In this document: positions 17,016-27,552 of the stretch, piece after piece
How the letters are laid out: each line of letters opens with the position of its first letter
Numbering within the stretch: position 1 is the first letter of the stretch
Source: Adineta vaga
Lineage: Eukaryota; Animalia; Rotifera
Length of the DNA: 64,000 nucleotides
Reading direction: 5' to 3'
Assembly (NCBI GenBank): GCA_021613535.1
Contig: CP075494.1
Span: forward strand, 6,324,001-6,388,000
The notes under the pieces: generated by a model
Seen by the model: the letters and a program-made list of their open reading frames with translations, nothing else
Database searches by the model: none
What the model was told of the DNA's origin: nothing
Made by a program: the position numbers and the translations under genes

Positions 17016-17968
17016 ATGTCCCCTGCTATGCACGATGAACACAATCGAACTACATCTGATACTCTACTTTTCACTCTTCTCTCACAAGAAGATCAACATC
17101 ACTATTCACAAATCAACAACATTCAACTTCCACATCACATTCTTCACATTCTACATCAGGTAACATTCACTTTTCCTCTCCTCTCACACTAATCATCTAA
17201 TCACTTTACTCCCGTTCTCTTCTAGTTAACTTCACTTCTTCACTCATCATCTACCTTGTGGATGTCAATTACTCTTCTCAAAAAACTCATTCTACAACAA
17301 CATTCCATCGATCTCATCATCGTCATTGCATCCTTCACTCTCGCTCACAAATATCAACAATCACACATCATTGATTATCAACTCATTGCTCAATCTTCTC
17401 ACATCGACGACATACAACTCATTCATGTAAGTCCACCTTCATTTCCTTCATTTCCTCCATCATCAACAACATCGTCATCATCTTCATTCTAGGATGCTGA
17501 AGTTGCAATACTCGATGCACTCTCATATGATATCTCTGTATCGACACCTGATGATTTCTTTTCTTACTTGTCAAATCTTGCCAACAACGATGAAGAAGGC
17601 AAAGATATCATTGAACAAGCTCGATGTTCATTATCGTCAACTTCACTCTCACATCAAACATTCGGTAAGCATGAAACAAATCGAAAGACTCGGTGTTTGT
17701 TGAAATTGTCTTTTATTTAGATCTTCTTCACAACTATCCATCGAGTATCGTCGTTCTCTCTCTCATCTCGCATCATTTTACATCGAATAGTTTCATTAAT
17801 GAACAAATCAAAAGTTTTGTTCTGCACAAGAAAGATGCGTCGAATTATCTGGTAAGTAAACATTGAAAATAGAAATATCGATGAATAACAATGTTTGTGT
17901 TTTGTTATTTGTAGAAACAATTGATCCATTGTACAACTCAACTTCAAAGTCATATGGCGCAATCATGA
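17016..17968 (+). CDS. Divergent cyclin-D-like gene, copy A (5 exons, ~233 aa, altered N- and C-termini)
   Basis: 17073-17954 matches copy B (offset 5815) apart from 3 substitutions seen by eye; own start MSPAMHDEHNRTTSDTLLF and end ...SHMAQS*. Confidence 0.7.
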
Positions 17969-18159
17969 TTTCATCAATACTTCTTTCTTTTTCTGCTTAC
18001 AGTGATCTTTGATGTGTCACATAAGACTTGAATATGTTTACATGAAGTGTTTTTTAGTCTTTTCTTGATTTGTGAAGAATTATTTTATATTGTGCAAACG
18101 TTGTATTATGAAAGACGACAAATATAAAAAATAATCAGATCTTATTCATCAATCCTTCT

Positions 18160-21037
18160 ATATGTAACTTGTCGACTGGCTGCAGGCACACTGAATCATT
18201 CACGAGTTGAAATATGGCGGCATGCATGATTATGTACTGCTTCTTTGTCTATTTATTCACATATGTAAGGCTGAGGATTGTGATACATTTCAATGTAGTA
18301 AAGGTGGCACGATGTCGTTTAGAAGAGACCTCATGCTTTCAAAGTAAAAGAATCAAGGAGAAAACGAAAAATATATAATATATCATTTGATACAAATTTT
18401 AATGACATTAGAAAAGCGGCCGTTGCGTAATGAATACAATGCGAAGGAAGTAGTTTTCAATAAACAGGTAGTAAAGAAAGTAAAAAGATCGAATCATAAA
18501 TATTTTTTTCGTATGTTCTTTGGACAATATTATTATGACTGTGTAAAAGGTGACTAATATATCTAGTATAAAACGGTTCTTTGCTTTCCAATTCGTTAAT
18601 ATGTAATAACCATGACAGTACATTTTTTTTATGTTGGAAAATATTTGAGATTTTTCCAATATATGCAACTATAAAACTATGATTCTTTAAGAATTCTTAA
18701 TTTTACAGATTCGTGCATTAAATTCACTTCGTTGGTCAAATATTTACTCCTTTTCGAATGTATCCGAATATACATCACATGTTACCAAATCCTCCATCGA
18801 ATCATATGAATAATATGTACAATGGTTTCACTTATAATCAACCTCAACTCGAACATTACGTATCTAGTGAAGAACGTATGGTTGGCTTTCAGAAGTTTGT
18901 TCTTCGTTATGGAAGTAAGTTTGATTTTGACAATAAGATACAATGAAAGAATGCTAAATATTATCTATCACAGTTAATGACACGTTTGCTTCAAAATTAC
19001 TTGGTTTAGATGGATATGAAATTGTTTTAATCTGTGATGATTCAGGTTCCATGAATACTATACTTAGTATGTCATTCTATTTCTCGTCTTGACACAATAA
19101 TTTGTTTTTCACTTTTTCAGGTGATGTTTCTGGCCCATACAATCAATCTCCAACTCGCTGTAAGAATTTGATCAATTCACTTAGAACTTTGGATGCTATT
19201 TTTGCTTGATTGTTCCTTTTTTTAGGGGATGAATTGAAGCATACTGTATCCATCGTTGTTGATCTAGCTAGTGTACTAGATCCAGATGGTGTTGATATCT
19301 ATTTTCTTAATCGTGAACCGATGCTTAATGTTCGCAGTTCACAAGAATTGATACCAGTATTTGCTGTAGCACCTGAAGGTATGTTTGATAGTGTGTGTTA
19401 AATGATATCAGTAGTTGTTGAAATGTTCACAGGTCCAACACCTATTGTACGAGTTCTACGACAAGTTCTTCACGATAAGCAAAAACAAATTGCTGAAAGA
19501 AAATTATTAATTCTTCTTGCAACTGATGGAGTACCCACAGATGATCGAGGTCAGGCAAACATTGATGAATTACGAAGAGTTCTCGCGTATGAACGTAGTT
19601 CAACCGAACGAATTCCAGTTACAATTATTGCTTGTACAGGTAAGCATTTTATTTGCAATGAACAACATAAACTTTATGATCATGAAATTATTTTTCGTTG
19701 AAAAGATGATGACAATTGTATGGCATATTTAAACAATTGGGATACAACCATTCCCAATCTTGACGTAGTAGATGATTATAAAAGCGAAAAGAATCAGATT
19801 CTCGATTGTCAAGGACAATCTTTCCCATTTAGTTTCGGTGATGTAAGTCATTTTATTTATAATATAAATATTAAATCTATGATAATGTATAGTATGTTGT
19901 AAAAATTCTAATGGGTGGTGTCGATCAATGGTTTGATCAATTAGATGAGAAAAAGGTCTCATTAGATAATTATGAACAATTTAAATCAGCTTCATCAACA
20001 GTATTAGCAAATGCAATAATTAAAAATTCACATTTTTCATCATGTTCGTAATATTATTATGATTCTATTATGATCATCTGAATTCATTTCTTTTCATAGA
20101 TTCCCCTCCAACATCATTGAATTCTAAATATCAACATTATTAATCAGCGTTACTAAACGACATTGTTTCATGTAGATATTTTTTGATGAATTTTAAAACG
20201 TATCACTTCATCTTCAAAGCGTTACTTCATAATAAGGACATGATCCGTTTCTTTATTCATATTGATGCCGGTACTGAATTATGACATCATCTAACTTCTA
20301 TTACTGTTGATGGAAAGTGTTAATTCTTTTCAAGTATCGTCGCTTCCTATTTTCTTCTCGATTATTTATTTAGTACCTAAATGAAAGAGGAATATATATA
20401 TCTAACAGATTAGTCATGATGCCATATTATATACGTAAATGAAACATATTGAATGACCGCTAGCGGAAAAGCAACTATTCAACATTTTTATTTCTTTGTC
20501 GGAAGATATAAATATCCTTCATGCAATTTTTGAACTAGAATCCATTAGATCAACTAACTTATCGACTAATTTCACTCTACTCCGAAGAGACTATATAAAT
20601 AAAGAGATTTGCTCGATTGAATGTTATTGAATAGATAATTTAGGATACAGATATAATCTTTGTTTATTCACATATGTGAGACTAAGGATGAATTCATTTG
20701 CACAGGCTAAAGATTGTTATTGATACAACAAGTGGATCATGAATATAATAATCAATAAACACCATGTTGTGATCCACCCACTCTCAGCAAATGAATGATC
20801 AACTATGTAAACATGAAGGTGTGACGAAAGACAACAAATCAATCGAGCATGATGATGAGTTTGTGAAAAAGATAGTGAAACACGTTTGTGTCCTAGATTG
20901 TAGTTGTATATGGTAGGAGGTGACTGGATATGATAGTTCTAGTTTCCTCATTTAGTGAGCTCATCAATTTGAGTTGAGCATGAGCAGAGAAACAGACAAG
21001 TGAGAAAATATCTTCGTCAAATAAAGTTGTGATATGG
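18160..21037. repeat. Split diverged direct-repeat block: ~18160-18280 plus ~20660-21037 together match ~24385-24882
   Basis: Shared CTGCAGGCACACTGAAT...CATGCATGATTAT and GTTATTGATACAACAAGTGGATCATGAATATAATAATC...GAGCAGAGAAACAGACAAGTGAGAA; ~35 bp indel between the copies. Confidence 0.85.
18758..20051 (+). CDS. Stand-alone von Willebrand factor A (MIDAS) domain protein of fungal/protist-like type, ~7 exons; 3' end slightly uncertain
   Basis: YEIVLICDDSGSM, TR|WDELKHTVSIVVDLASVLDPDGVDIYFLNR, GPTP, LLILLATDGVP, YLNNWD...LDVVDDY.SEK..I...QG..FPFSFGDYVVKILMG. Confidence 0.85.
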
Positions 21038-22156
21038 CTGACATGAACAAGATTGATATCATTAGGGGAAATAATAACACAAATAATTGTTGACGATAAT
21101 CATTGTGAGACATTCATCTCGAAGTCAATCTGAATATATTCTCGCGTAATGAGATAAATTGTTAATAAAACAATAATTATCGATCAATATTTTTCTTCGT
21201 TTCTCAGCATCTAACAAGAAGCATTCATTTGTATGGCTCATTAGCATGGTATTGAATGAAAATAGATAAGTTATTTTTGCATTGATAAACAGTTACTGTC
21301 TAGAGACTCATAAGGAGGTTCAAACCACAGGAATGCTCAATAAGCCATGATGAGTATATGTCTATTTAGTATGAGACTGGTGATAAACATGTGTAGATGC
21401 TAATCTCTCATGGGTCATCGATCGAAACATACAATTTCAATTAAGTGGTGCGATATTGAGAAGTGATTTATTTTTCTCCTTTCCTTCGTTCCCTATGGAT
21501 GATATCGTTTCATAATTAGGTGATTATTATATTTCGGTTAGTGACGATTAGATATGCACATATACGCAGCACTCATGATTCCGATAGACTGATTTCACTC
21601 CATACTTTAACGAATAATATCACTTCACACCTGAGAATAGATATGAATTCTAACTTGTTATTACAAAAGTTCATAGATTGGAATTGATTGCTTCGAGCAG
21701 ATAAAATATTCCTATCTCAATAGCTATTATAAATGAAATTAATGATGACTTTCGTTCAAAAACAAGAGTGCTTGTATAATACATTTGAAAATGTCTTAGA
21801 TATCTATTCAAATGAATTTCACCTCTTAATGAATGTAAAGCAGATGTTTTGTGATTATCGTCTGTCTCAATCTTGAATTTATCATTCTATTCAATTTCAT
21901 ATGTCAAAATATCCCTGACATCATCATGTTCTACATTTTATTGTCATTAAACTGTCATTATTATTGGGTCACATCTCATTTTCGAGCTGCACTACGTGTG
22001 AAAATATCTTCATTCTATAGCACATTCATTTCATGATTAGTATGACATCATATAAATTTCTATCGAATCGTTTCTCTAAATCTCTCTCGCGTGTAAACGA
22101 CAGCCGGATCGGTTCGATTTCAGTGCGTTTGTTTCGATCATTTATTTGTACTCTTG

Positions 22157-22268
22157 TGATCATGATTTATGATGGATAAAAAGATTTGTGCGGTGAAAAT
22201 GTGTCAAAGTCACTAAGAATGAAACAAATTTGAAAAGAGCGCATCGACGCGTGCCGAATAACATCAAA
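22157..22268. repeat. 112-bp block, inverted copy at 26681-26792 (2 mismatches seen), upstream of both palindromic cyclin genes
   Basis: TGATCATGATTTATGATGG...GCCGAATAACATCAAA reverse-complements to 26681-26792. Confidence 0.9.
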
Positions 22269-22685
22269 AATTTAAAAAGATTAAAGGTAGGCGGAGAGAG
22301 GAGGATAAAGATGCATCGTTTCAAAAAAAAAGAAAACGATACAGCCGAGTCGGTATGATGAACACGCAAACAGACAATGATTGAAAAGTAAATAATAACT
22401 CATCATTGATTCAAACAGATCAAAAACAATGACGAACGACACTCAAAGGCTAGGTATATAGCTGACTTTCAGCTTGTTCACAAGATCAACCATATATCTT
22501 CATTTTCATTGTCATGAAAGTTTCAAATCATTGCTTAATGTACCGTCCATGTTCAGCATAACTATACTTTGTTGTTATATCATAGAAGATTGAAAACGCT
22601 CAATCTGCTCATACACACAGATGATATACTGAAAACAGCTGATCAAAAGAGGCAGAACGCCAAACAGTAAGTAATCTGGATCACC

Positions 22686-22743
22686 ATTGGTCAATCTACT
22701 TTTCTCTTTCCTTCCTCTTTCCTTCTCTCGCCTCCCTATAAAT
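22686..22743 (+). promoter_or_regulatory. Core promoter of cyclin-like copy B: inverted CCAAT (ATTGG 22686) and TATAAAT (22737-22743); mirrored for copy C at ~26389-26446
   Basis: TATA box ~52 bp and CCAAT ~105 bp upstream of the ATG at 22795. Confidence 0.6.
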
Positions 22744-22794
22744 ACACAACATCACTACGACTCTTCCCTATTCATTTCATTCGACTTCTTCATC

Positions 22795-23777
22795 ATGATC
22801 TCATCCGCACTCAACTGCATCGCTCCTCAATCCATTCGAGCTGCACCTGATACACAACTCTCATCACCAGAAACTCATCTTCTCGCAACTCTTCTCTCAC
22901 AAGAAGATCAACATCACTATTCACAAATCAACAACATTCAACTTCCACATCACATTCTTCACATTCTACATCAGGTAACATTCACTTTTCCTCTCCTCTC
23001 ACACTAATCATCTAATCACTTTACTCCCGTTCTCTTCTAGTTAACTTCACTTCTTCACTCATCATCTACCTTGTGGATGTCAATTACTCTTCTCAAAAAA
23101 CTCATTCTACAACAACATTCCATCGATCTCATCATCGTCATTGCATCCTTCACTCTCGCTCACAAATATCAACAATCACACATCATTGATTATCAACTCA
23201 TTGCTCAATCTTCTCACATCGACGACATACAACTCATTCATGTAAGTCCACCTTCATTTCCTTCATTTCCTCCATCATCAACAACATCGTCATCATCTTC
23301 ATTCTAGGATGCTGAAGTTGCAATACTCGATGCACTCTCATATGATATCTCTGTATCGACACCTGATGATTTCTTTTCTTACTTGTCAAATCTTGCCAAC
23401 AACGATGAAGAAGGCAAAGATATCATTGAACAAGCTCGATGTTCATTATCGTCAACTTCACTCTCACATCAAACATTCGGTAAGCATGAAACAAATCGAA
23501 AGACTCGGTGTTTGTTGAAGTTGTCTTGTATTTAGATCTTCTTCACAACTATCCATCGAGTATCGTCGTTCTCTCTCTCATCTCGCATCATTTTACATCG
23601 AATAGTTTCATTAATGAACAAATCAAAAGTTTTGTTCTGCACAAGAAAGATGCGTCGAATTATCTGGTAAGTAAACATTGAAAATAGAAATATCGATGAA
23701 TAACAATGTTTGTGTTTTGTTATTTGTAGAAACAATTGATCCATTGTACAACCCAACTTCAAAGTCATACTTCATAA
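22795..23777 (+). CDS. Divergent cyclin-D-like gene, copy B (exons 22795-22974, 23041-23241, 23308-23479, 23536-23666, 23730-23777; 243 aa)
   Basis: Four GT-AG introns give an open frame: MISSALNCIAPQSIRAAPDTQL...LLATLLSQED...ASFTLAHKYQQ...DAEVAILDALSYDISVSTPDDFFSYL...NYPSSIVVLSL...QLIHCTTQL. Compare cyclin D: [50 protein letters not shown]. Confidence 0.8.
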
Positions 23778-25354
23778 TCATGATCTAACTTTTGCCGAAC
23801 AGTGATCAATCATGAACGAAGTTAGCTCACATTGCATTCATCGGATCATTTTCTTTATGTTTGATGTTCTACAGTTGTTTATTTATTTTCTTCTTAGTCT
23901 ATTTTTTTATTCTCATGTATAAATGAAAGATATTTTACGATTAAACATGATACTACTTCACGATACTTCCTTTCATAACATCTTAAACAATGAAAATGAC
24001 AAGCAATAATCGTATACTCCGCAACAGAGATTAAATAGATTACAGATGAAGTGCTTTGTTTGGACGTTTGTCAGTTTTAAAACTGTAAAGTTTAACGAAT
24101 GTTTCATAATAGTTTCCTGGCCAGTTTGGATAGCACTTACATCTTTATATGATATTATTATACTTGGACTGCGCTTCAAATAGAGACAGAAAAGGTGAAG
24201 TAGATCAATTTCAATTGAATCAATTAAATATATTTTTGAATCACACTATAATCATCTGATATCATTTATCGACAGAAATTGAAATAGCTGTCGATTAGCT
24301 AAAGGCATTTGTCAGTAAATCGATTGTTTCTTTTGTCGGAAAGACAAGTATCTTTCACACAATATCCAGATCATTCGTTTCGTATATAAGTTGCCGACTG
24401 ACTGCAGGCACACTGAATTATGCACGAGTGGAAATATGACGACATGCATGATTATAGATAGTTTTGTTTGTTTATTTGTTCGTGGATAGGAAGCTAAGAC
24501 TGAATTAATCAATTTAGGATGGAAAGTGTTATTGATACAACAAGTGGATCATGAATATAATAATCAATAAACACCATGTTGTGATTCACCCACTCTCAGC
24601 AAACGAATGATCAACTATGTAAACACACACACCCTCACATACAAGTAGTTCTAATTGATGCGAAGGTGCGAAGAAAAGAAACAAATCAATCGAGCATGAT
24701 GATGAGTTTGTGAAAAAGATAGTGAAACACGTTTGTGTCCTAGATTGTAGTTGTATATTGTAGGAGGTGACTGGATATTTTAGTTCTAGTTTCCTCATTC
24801 AGTGAGCTCATCAATTTGAGTTGAGCATGAGCAGAGAAACAGACAAGTGAGAATATCTTCGTTGAATACAGTTGTTATATGGTTCACGCTGAAAAGTTAC
24901 TACTTTGCTGATCTAGGCAATAACTATCGAAAGAATGCCAATCTTTCAGTGGTATGTTTCACTCTACTATAAAAATGTGTGTGATACAATGAAATAACAT
25001 GATTTTGCATCATTCATCTTTTCAGAATAGAGCTATTCGAAGATGATCATTAGAACTGTCGCAATATGATTTAAACATTGACTCATTCGCTAACATTGAA
25101 CAAACTTCATAACCAGACTTAGATAAAAGTAGTATTTGCTCTTGTAACTTAGACACCACTGAAACGATAAAAAAGCGTAATAATTATCGGGAACGGCAAA
25201 AAATTAAATTTATATTCAACATAATAAAAATAGACTAAGAAGAAAATAAATAAACAACTGTAGAACATCAAACATAAAGAAAATGATCCGATGAATGCAA
25301 TGTGAGCTAACTTCGTTCATGATTGATCACTGTTCGGCAAAAGTTAGATCATGA

Positions 25355-26337
25355 TTATGAAGTATGACTTTGAAGTTGGGTTGTACAATGGATCAATTGT
25401 TTCTACAAATAACAAAACACAAACATTGTTATTCATCGATATTTCTATTTTCAATGTTTACTTACCAGATAATTCGACGCATCTTTCTTGTGCAGAACAA
25501 AACTTTTGATTTGTTCATTAATGAAACTATTCGATGTAAAATGATGCGAGATGAGAGAGAGAACGACGATACTCGATGGATAGTTGTGAAGAAGATCTAA
25601 ATACAAGACAACTTCAACAAACACCGAGTCTTTCGATTTGTTTCATGCTTACCGAATGTTTGATGTGAGAGTGAAGTTGACGATAATGAACATCGAGCTT
25701 GTTCAATGATATCTTTGCCTTCTTCATCGTTGTTGGCAAGATTTGACAAGTAAGAAAAGAAATCATCAGGTGTCGATACAGAGATATCATATGAGAGTGC
25801 ATCGAGTATTGCAACTTCAGCATCCTAGAATGAAGATGATGACGATGTTGTTGATGATGGAGGAAATGAAGGAAATGAAGGTGGACTTACATGAATGAGT
25901 TGTATGTCGTCGATGTGAGAAGATTGAGCAATGAGTTGATAATCAATGATGTGTGATTGTTGATATTTGTGAGCGAGAGTGAAGGATGCAATGACGATGA
26001 TGAGATCGATGGAATGTTGTTGTAGAATGAGTTTTTTGAGAAGAGTAATTGACATCCACAAGGTAGATGATGAGTGAAGAAGTGAAGTTAACTAGAAGAG
26101 AACGGGAGTAAAGTGATTAGATGATTAGTGTGAGAGGAGAGGAAAAGTGAATGTTACCTGATGTAGAATGTGAAGAATGTGATGTGGAAGTTGAATGTTG
26201 TTGATTTGTGAATAGTGATGTTGATCTTCTTGTGAGAGAAGAGTTGCGAGAAGATGAGTTTCTGGTGATGAGAGTTGTGTATCAGGTGCAGCTCGAATGG
26301 ATTGAGGAGCGATGCAGTTGAGTGCGGATGAGATCAT
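25355..26337 (-). CDS. Divergent cyclin-D-like gene, copy C (inverted copy of B, no differences seen)
   Basis: Reverse complement of 22795-23777. Confidence 0.8.
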
Positions 26338-27552
26338 GATGAAGAAGTCGAATGAAATGAATAGGGAAGAGTCGTAGTGATGTTGTGTATTTATAGGGAG
26401 GCGAGAGAAGGAAAGAGGAAGGAAAGAGAAAAGTAGATTGACCAATGATGATTGACATATATTGTTCTTATTTTAGGTGATCAGCTGTAGTTTTGTAATC
26501 TCACTATGAAATAAAGTAAGGACATTTTATAAGGAGCAATTTAACGTAGCTTCTGATCGCTTTCAATAGATGATACATCATTATTTTCTTTTCAATCATC
26601 CTTTCTTTGCGTATCCATTATATTAATATGCATTTTCGCTGCTCCTCCCTTACTTCAATCTACCTTTATTCTCTATAGTCTTTGATGTTATTCGGCACGC
26701 GTTGATGCGCTCTTTTCAAATTTGTTTTATTCTTAGTGACTTTGACACATTTTCACCGCACAAATCTTTTTATCCATCATAAATCATGATCAAAAAAATA
26801 TAAATGAATTCGAACTGATTATTCGATCGTTTTGCATGCAAGAAAGATTAAAGATCATTGAAGATGCGATGTAACATAGGAGACATGATAGTTTATTAAC
26901 AACAAAATTGTTTATAACTATCTAGGAACTTTGATCCATTTTTGATCCAATCTGTTCATCTTCACGTTGTAGAGATTTTCGAGTTTCTACGACAAAGAAA
27001 TTCAAAGAAACATCGGTACATATATATTTCATAGAAATTTCATATACCATAACAATTTTTTAGTGCAGTATCTTTATCACTTTTGAAAAATACTAAACTA
27101 CCTGGTTGTTGAATATAAACTTTCTGAAAAAGAAACAAGTAACTGTATATAAGAATGTTGTGAGAAAGGATATTTACACGTCCTGTTTTTAATGCTTCTA
27201 ACTCATGTTGTAGAACAGTAGTAGCTTGAATCTAAAGACACGAATAATTATGATTTTTATTTTTATTATTCCTGATTGATGTATAAGTAAAAAGAGAAAG
27301 TTATTCACTGACCTTTACTTGAATATTGGACTTAGTAGAAGACATAGTATAAAATACTTGATTTTATTTCTAGAAAAGATAACTATTAGTTATCATTATT
27401 TCAACTGTTGTATTTTTTTCATCACGAACATATGGCTTTATGCGGAAAAAGTAGTATACATAACAATCAAGAAAACAATAAACACAATACAAAAATAAAT
27501 CTTGCAAACAACTTAAACAAAAAAAAGGTCATAGCTTGAATTTGTGAGATTT

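Follow-up and report, generated by a model that had tools for sequence, protein, structure and literature searches.

A divergent cyclin, most probably of D-type descent, in three copies on one contig of the bdelloid rotifer Adineta vaga

Cyclins contact the PSTAIRE helix of cyclin-dependent kinases (CDKs) through a Lys in helix 3 and a Glu in helix 5. Bdelloid rotifers are eutelic, ancient asexuals that tolerate desiccation and radiation, and to our knowledge their cell-cycle control is almost unstudied; among the matches listed for literature naming bdelloid and cyclin D in full text, no title concerned a family such as the one described here. The closest described systems are D-type cyclins: human cyclin D1, the product of CCND1, with its isoform D1b, which is made without exon 5 and the PEST (Pro-, Glu-, Ser- and Thr-rich)/Thr286 region that this exon carries (PMC10079974); the D-type cyclins of herpesviruses; and the canonical cyclin D of bdelloids themselves, I4U23_025963 and I4U23_007333 in A. 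vaga (proteins P0056 and P0060; loci L009 and L007). Here we analysed a stretch of 64,000 nucleotides (nt) from the A. vaga genome (C5:6324001-6388000; the assembly comprises 100.8 Mb in six contigs), hereafter the window, which is AT-rich (G+C ~31%) and in which a gene for a predicted, highly divergent cyclin occurs three times.

On balance, we favour the view that this gene encodes a lineage-restricted, fast-evolving two-box cyclin of ~245 aa that arose by an old D-type duplication and likely binds a CDK. Such a history would begin in a common ancestor of Adineta and Rotaria, in which a D-type cyclin gene was duplicated; the five-exon, CCND1-like structure and the PSTAIRE-gripping Lys/Glu pair would then have been kept and the C-terminal tail lost; as its likeliest mechanism, the product would bind a CDK as a regulatory subunit. 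In A. vaga this would have resulted in three copies on C5, one in tandem and two paired head to head as a palindrome, and in a fourth on C2, with gene conversion presumably keeping those on C5 almost identical.

A spliced gene in three copies

The open reading frame (ORF) fragments that compose the gene, rich in His, Ser and Leu, are present three times in the window, as copies A, B and C. Copy A (17016-17968, plus strand) encodes 233 aa, copy B (22795-23777, plus strand) 243 aa by the spliced model, and copy C (25355-26337, minus strand) likewise 243 aa, with a coding sequence identical to that of copy B; the triplication described in an earlier, sequence-only reading of this DNA is therefore real. 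In copy B, exon 1 (22795-22974) contributes 60 aa and ends in phase 0 after LHQ, while exon 2 (23041-23241) contributes 67 aa that make up helices 2-4 of the first cyclin box, with the invariant Lys102. Exon 3 (23308-23479; 172 nt, phase-1 end) begins with DAE, contains the invariant Glu130 and aligns from CCND1 residue 139 onwards. Exon 4 (23536-23666; 131 nt) encodes cyclin box 2, and exon 5 (23730-23777) adds 15 codons and a TAA stop, which provide the last helix and no C-terminal tail. All four introns are GT..AG, measure 56-66 nt and have phases 0, 0, 1 and 0. The exons of copy A lie at 17016-17159, 17226-17426, 17493-17664, 17721-17851 and 17915-17968 on the plus strand, and those of copy C, in order of translation, at 26158-26337, 25891-26091, 25653-25824, 25466-25596 and 25355-25402 on the minus strand.

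Public assembled contigs were compared with positions 22300-24300 of the window. Two of them, 833 nt long (run X1) and 863 nt long (run X5) and stemming from two independent studies, skip the four introns (22975-23040, 23242-23307, 23480-23535 and 23667-23729) exactly and with zero mismatches, the junction 22974/23041 between exons 1 and 2 included. At least the form shared by copies B and C is thus transcribed and correctly spliced as predicted; this evidence does not extend to copy A. A 176-nt contig of run X1 has a loose end identical to the outer flank of copy C (26453-26482), and contigs of two further runs, filed under other organism labels, continue through the introns like genomic DNA.

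The gene is already in GenBank, merely unnamed, and hence not hidden, as the sequence-only reading had supposed. Copies A, B and C are all listed there as "hypothetical protein" (UJR20796.1, 233 aa, our P0021; UJR20798.1, 207 aa; and UJR20799.1, 243 aa, our P0032, respectively), as is a 245-aa A. vaga paralogue from a different contig (UJR28784.1). In P0032, which served as the full-length reference for the family protein, the translations of all five exons follow one another in the right order, with Asp as the split codon, and it equals the spliced model exon by exon. The 243-aa protein and its four GT-AG introns of phases 0, 0, 1 and 0, as first read from the letters, are therefore backed by GenBank and by RNA from two studies at all four junctions, a check that had been set beforehand. 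The 207-aa GenBank model of copy B splices exon 3 to an ORF of the adjoining spacer (24046-24183, plus strand) and not to exons 4 and 5; this alternative 3' exon is without support from the RNA contigs, which back the 243-aa form only. Upstream of copy B, promoter-like motifs can be read at 22686-22744 (plus strand), namely an inverted CCAAT (ATTGG) at 22686-22690 and TATAAATA at 22737-22744, ~50 nt before the ATG, both of which are candidate promoter elements.

Predicted cyclin fold and probable D-type ancestry

Searching a representative library with exon 2 returned 11 relatives, including a correctly spliced 245-aa Rotaria protein (P0005), and 11 full-length sequences from Adineta and Rotaria were assembled into a family profile (A1). 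Identity of the members to P0032 is 51-65%, and 59 columns are invariant, K102 and E130 among them. With A1, the A. vaga genome yielded four loci, the three described here and one at C2:13673529-13674394. The five-exon structure and its phases are the same in this C2 paralogue (L004) and in Rotaria sp. (L018), and two orthologues bear the UniRef label "cyclin-like". All named matches came from Adineta and Rotaria, the remainder being metagenome or run assemblies; among named sequences, the family is most probably restricted to bdelloid rotifers.

An AlphaFold2 (AF2) model built on A1 (predicted local distance difference test, pLDDT, 74; predicted TM-score, pTM, 0.71) comprises 13 helices, with residues 1-38 disordered, and its predicted fold is a double cyclin box, that is, two tandem five-helix boxes. 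Cyclins D, A, B and E can be overlaid on some 200-215 residues of the model with Z 14-16.6, and the best 50 Foldseek matches were all cyclins. An exhaustive structural search placed cyclins at Z 13-16 over ~200 residues and single-box proteins (TFIIB, the Rb pocket) at Z 8-13, and the named language-model neighbours carried Cyclin_N in 30 out of 30 cases. As modelled, the protein has a cyclin fold, which is what the sequence-only reading had proposed.

Beyond the fold, the protein most probably descends from a D-type cyclin, on the basis of its intron positions and phases, its sole sequence match in the Protein Data Bank (PDB) and the structures that rank first. Run against the PDB, A1 matched four cyclin D1 sequences and nothing else at E<10 (E 0.07-0.09); the alignment begins precisely where exon 3 does, with family position 131 opposite D1 residue 139. 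In a second-look structural ranking, the top 11 entries were cyclin D1, cyclin D3 and the D-type cyclin of the herpesvirus MHV-68 (Z 15.7-16.6 over 204-215 residues), with cyclin A (at most 15.4) and cyclin B ranking below them.

Gene structure points the same way. The first two introns of the family separate LHQ from LT and IH from DAE (both phase 0), and the third, in phase 1, lies six residues before a Pro-Ser. In the canonical A. vaga cyclin D genes (L007 on C2 and L009 on C5, located as such with D1 and D3 as their sole significant PDB matches), the corresponding introns separate LYK from LCEDE and EIF from DAEQ (both phase 0), and the third, in phase 1, lies eight residues before Pro-Ser, an offset of two residues relative to this landmark. 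Exons 2 and 3 of these canonical genes begin at CCND1 residues 67 and 139, their exon 3 measures 160 nt and there is no fourth intron, a structure shared by the canonical D genes of Rotaria. In a profile-profile alignment of the family with canonical bdelloid D, introns 1 and 2 occupy the same columns, and the exon-junction motifs are common to both: LH(Q/K) before LT at the first, I(H/F) before (D/N)xE at the second. At the intron-2 position, no intron was present in those A. vaga cyclins E, A/B and G/I that were inspected. The fourth intron of the family falls immediately before the xxLxxC helix and presumably maps onto intron 4 of CCND1, a residue mapping that we assume, along with the other human exon sizes.

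Four introns were thus found at the equivalents of CCND1 places that the sequence-only reading had given, the first following WMLE, the second preceding QME, the third in phase 1 ahead of the N-P-P-S region and the fourth preceding DCLRAC: the fourth agrees with the published position of human intron 4 after codon 241 (PMC10079974), the first two are borne out indirectly, through canonical D residues 67 and 139, and the third holds with the two-residue offset. Sequence, structure, gene structure and junction motifs concur, none of the four lines being decisive alone; the proposed D-type derivation is carried by the introns, the D1 match in the PDB and the structural rank of D-type entries, its sequence scores being non-significant. 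Since canonical bdelloid D has no intron 4, the split of the two lineages most simply predates that loss, which agrees with the occurrence of both lineages in Adineta and Rotaria.

Other searches were less informative. At exon level, hmmsearch and hhalign comparisons of A1 with 17 cyclin loci gave weak and partly spurious matches (E 0.003-0.06, probability ~6%) and had no power. A search for non-bdelloid D cyclins with a profile of canonical bdelloid D returned only Adineta and Rotaria among named matches. The N-terminal segment IRAAxDPQLS...LLxTLLSEED resembles what we take to be the stretch ahead of the cyclin box in vertebrate D cyclins; used as a profile, it gave a single chance match in the PDB, to GRB2 (E 1.9), and the likeness is no more than a lead. 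Three loci first taken for cyclin D (L001-L003) proved to be cyclin C, of which two copies lie 12.5 kb apart on C6 (L001 and L002, C6:12490465 and 12502979), each beside a Deltex-like RING gene, and a further one lies on C3 (L003). The canonical D model on C5 (P0056, 269 aa) contains 13 extra residues after exon 3, an insert that its orthologues are without and that coincides with a stop-free stretch across intron 3 (L009:1054-1512, C5 ~12.557 Mb); it looks like a retained intron.

Several results weigh against the favoured reading. Every sequence link between the family and cyclins is below conventional significance. Cyclin_N (PF00134; gathering score 23 bits) was the sole recurrent Pfam match, found in 6 of the 11 members at E<1 (best 4.5e-4) and always sub-threshold; orthologue P0005 reached 17.1 bits, and a whole-genome Cyclin_N scan produced 37 matches, none of them at the C5 locus of copies A-C. 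The profile-profile comparison with bdelloid D was collinear and not significant (E 0.09, probability 0.6%). By the standard of the structural tool, the Z gap of ~1 between D-type and A/B cyclins is a tie, and intron 1 is also common to A. vaga cyclin E. A search for CDK4/6 genes in A. vaga supplied no partner for the family protein, and its dN/dS (ratio of non-synonymous to synonymous change) reaches 0.6-0.9 between close Rotaria species, values that weak constraint could also produce. Further searches gave no cyclin either: the Pfam search of P0032 itself returned no Cyclin_N match, single exons gave just chance Pfam matches to MENTAL and DHR-2, and phmmer of P0005 against the PDB gave no match.

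These figures leave some room for a divergent cyclin-fold protein of another class, or of none that can be settled, which would owe its D-like traits to convergence or to ancestral introns held in common. Sequence statistics cannot discriminate cyclin classes here, the structural Z values of cyclins D, A, B and E are at most ~1.5 apart, the cyclin E genes have intron 1 too, and cyclins J, O and G/I, for which no structure has been solved, had no entries with which to compete in the PDB. However, of the A. vaga cyclins inspected, canonical D is alone in matching introns 2 and 3, the place of intron 4 is that of human CCND1, the sole PDB sequence matches are D1, and the ten D-type entries all score above every A, B and E entry structurally. 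We consider such an origin unlikely, though it is the alternative to which we give most weight.

Predicted CDK-facing residues, lost motifs and concerted evolution

None of the 11 family members departs from K102 and E130, which correspond in alignment to the Lys and Glu of canonical bdelloid D; in the hidden Markov model (HMM) alignment, the DAE of the family stands opposite the QME of cyclin D1. Retention of the two residues, correctly picked out by the sequence-only reading, suggests that the CDK-binding face has been kept and that the protein may bind a CDK. Its C terminus was also described correctly: the protein stops shortly after the last helix, 15 residues past intron 4, with no PEST/Thr-Pro phosphodegron tail, whereas canonical bdelloid D runs ~35 residues further and includes a PIDTSP-like Thr/Ser-Pro site.

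A different picture emerged for the Rb-related motifs. The Rb-binding motif LxCxE is not present in any of the 11 family members, nor in any of nine canonical bdelloid D proteins (9/9), and the LNCIA of P0032, previously taken for its remnant, belongs to an N-terminal segment that is not conserved among orthologues. Where MRKIVATWMLE stands in cyclin D1, all nine canonical bdelloid D proteins have KRRxIADxLHK, so that the Trp of the MRxIxxxW patch is gone from them as well. Because canonical bdelloid D is also without LxCxE and this Trp, the motif loss is a bdelloid trait rather than a property of this gene, and the description of the gene as specially rewired or Rb-uncoupled is not supported.

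This bears on the proposal that the gene encodes a stable, Rb-uncoupled or dominant-negative D cyclin that sequesters or redirects CDK4/6, as a special controller in a eutelic parthenogen. The missing LxCxE, the absence of the Thr/Ser-Pro-bearing tail that canonical bdelloid D keeps, the retained Lys/Glu pair, the amplification to three copies and the presence of Rb-family genes in the A. vaga genome would all be in keeping with it. Against this stand the same motif losses in canonical bdelloid D, the lack of conservation of LNCIA within the family, and the outcome of the A. vaga CDK search, which found CDK9, CDK10, CDK11, PCTAIRE, CDK1/2-like and JNK kinases, a PSTAIRE-less CDK-like kinase and no CDK4/6. 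We judge the proposal improbable.

The kinase and Rb searches also turned up features of their own. The CDK1/2-like genes lie at C5:6080460, C2:14152113, C4:4980217 and C4:10566395. Three Rb-family (RB_A) loci lie within ~32 kb at C4:14643793-14675823 (with L064 and L065), two of which are followed by truncated fragments of JNK-like kinases; JNK copies that look intact occupy C4:14562428 and C4:14575967 in inverted orientation. A CDK-like kinase with LLCVVIRE instead of PSTAIRE (L040, C4:7017392-7018375) may be a possible partner for divergent cyclins, and another CDK-like sequence (L051, C1:3536892-3537428), in which HRD has become YHC and DFG has become NFE, is a possible pseudokinase.

Rates of change were estimated as dN/dS by the Nei-Gojobori method, with counts summed exon by exon and split codons dropped. 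Between close Rotaria species, the family evolves at dN/dS 0.61-0.90 (dS 0.11-0.20) and canonical cyclin D of the same species at 0.37-0.58 (dS 0.08-0.12). Comparisons within Adineta, between the C5 copies and the C2 paralogue, and between Adineta and Rotaria gave 0.22-0.29, at a saturating dS of ~1. Taken together, these values suggest that non-synonymous change in the family is 2-3 times faster than in canonical D, with a constrained core kept. Duplicates that drift, dispensable and little constrained by selection though still transcribed, would show such elevated values at similar dS, and the His/Ser/Leu-rich composition would suit them. Yet 11 of 11 full-length sequences from two genera preserve the reading frame and the four introns intact, the 59 invariant columns are concentrated in helices and CDK-contact residues, dN/dS falls to 0.22-0.29 at larger distances, and spliced mRNA was found in two studies. 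Drift alone therefore strikes us as a poor explanation, with little chance of being right.

A bolder version of the D-type reading would see here a private second D lineage of bdelloids that has lost its degradation tail, has been under recurrent positive selection, is maintained as converted copies and pairs with an unusual CDK-like kinase (for example that at C4:7017392) in a lineage-specific cell-cycle decision. Its role would be, for instance, in germline or embryonic divisions of the eutelic body, or in re-entry after desiccation. In this full form, we regard the scenario as doubtful.

The three C5 copies differ far less than their surroundings. Copies B and C sit in the arms of an inverted repeat of 1245 nt (22680-23924, plus strand, and 25208-26452; 99-99.8% identical), the left arm of which contains the entire copy B transcription unit with its promoter-like motifs. 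Differences between the arms are confined to 22684 and 23907-23917, and the coding region is fully identical. Copy A matches copies B and C at 99% across 897 nt (17073-17969); it departs from B at two bases within introns and at a few where its last exon ends. Upstream of 17073 its 5' end is unrelated to B, and its first 19 residues and last residues differ from those of B and C, so that the first-exon stretch 17016-17072 and the 3' end at 17955-17968 tell copy A apart from the other two. The 99-99.8% identity is confined to the transcription unit and begins right at the inverted CCAAT motif. Outside it, the palindrome continues in diverged form, 26551-26814 (minus strand) being 75-90% identical to 22133-22425, and the sequences downstream of copies A and B are 79-85% identical. 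Gene bodies of ~99% identity inside flanks of 75-90% speak for gene conversion between older duplicates, not for a very recent triplication, and this pattern indicates that the three C5 copies have been homogenised by conversion limited to the gene.

Between the two arms lies a spacer of 1283 nt (23925-25207), which holds 79-85% identical copies of sequence downstream of copy A (18148-18258 and 20715-21037). A multi-exon gene, presumably I4U23_023910, occupies 18750-20050 (plus strand) between copies A and B; its ORF pieces are without a Pfam match. This gene is missing from the duplicated flank of copy B, owing either to its insertion after copy A or to its deletion after copy B. On a larger scale, cyclin E genes at C5:6018048-6018492 and C2:14275448-14275901 are found 0.3-0.6 Mb away from the divergent-cyclin loci on both contigs; such proximity would be expected if C2 and C5 are homoeologous segments and probably does not reflect a functional linkage.

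Comparison with known cyclins

The family is a divergent, lineage-restricted addition to a very well-known superfamily and of moderate weight as such; lineage-specific cyclins are common, which makes the finding useful rather than surprising. If the favoured reading is true, a private, expressed and tail-less offshoot of D cyclins would offer a concrete handle on how bdelloids regulate their few divisions. The locus is also a clean, small case of concerted evolution, in which a tandem copy and a palindromic pair appear homogenised exactly over the transcription unit.

Its closest known counterpart is canonical bdelloid cyclin D. Both have two cyclin boxes in ~250 aa, the positions and phases of the first three introns, the conserved Lys and Glu, and the junction motifs; both are without LxCxE, and both have copies on C2 and C5. 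Unlike canonical bdelloid D, to which it is just 16-20% identical, the family has a longer N-terminus, possesses intron 4 and is tail-less, where the canonical protein has no intron 4 and a tail ~35 residues longer with its Thr/Ser-Pro site. The canonical protein passes Pfam Cyclin_N and Cyclin_C and matches cyclin D1 at E ~1e-6, whereas the Cyclin_N matches of the family stay below threshold and its D1 matches at E 0.07-0.09.

With human CCND1, the family has in common five exons and four introns of phases 0, 0, 1 and 0 at equivalent places, and cyclin D1 is its best PDB match in both sequence and structure. Human cyclin D1 pairs with CDK4/6; for the family, such pairing would be hypothetical. 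Identity to cyclin D1 is ~12% in the structural alignment, LxCxE is missing, and exon 5 still encodes the last helix. In being without the degron-bearing C-terminal tail, the family protein resembles the D1b isoform.

The overall shape of the protein, in turn, recalls the D-type cyclins of herpesviruses (MHV-68 cyclin, K-cyclin and V-cyclin), which are likewise short (~230-250 aa), tail-less, highly divergent and D-derived, and which rank among the best structural matches of the family (Z 15-16). Unlike these intron-less viral captures, however, the bdelloid family is cellular, intron-bearing and vertically inherited.

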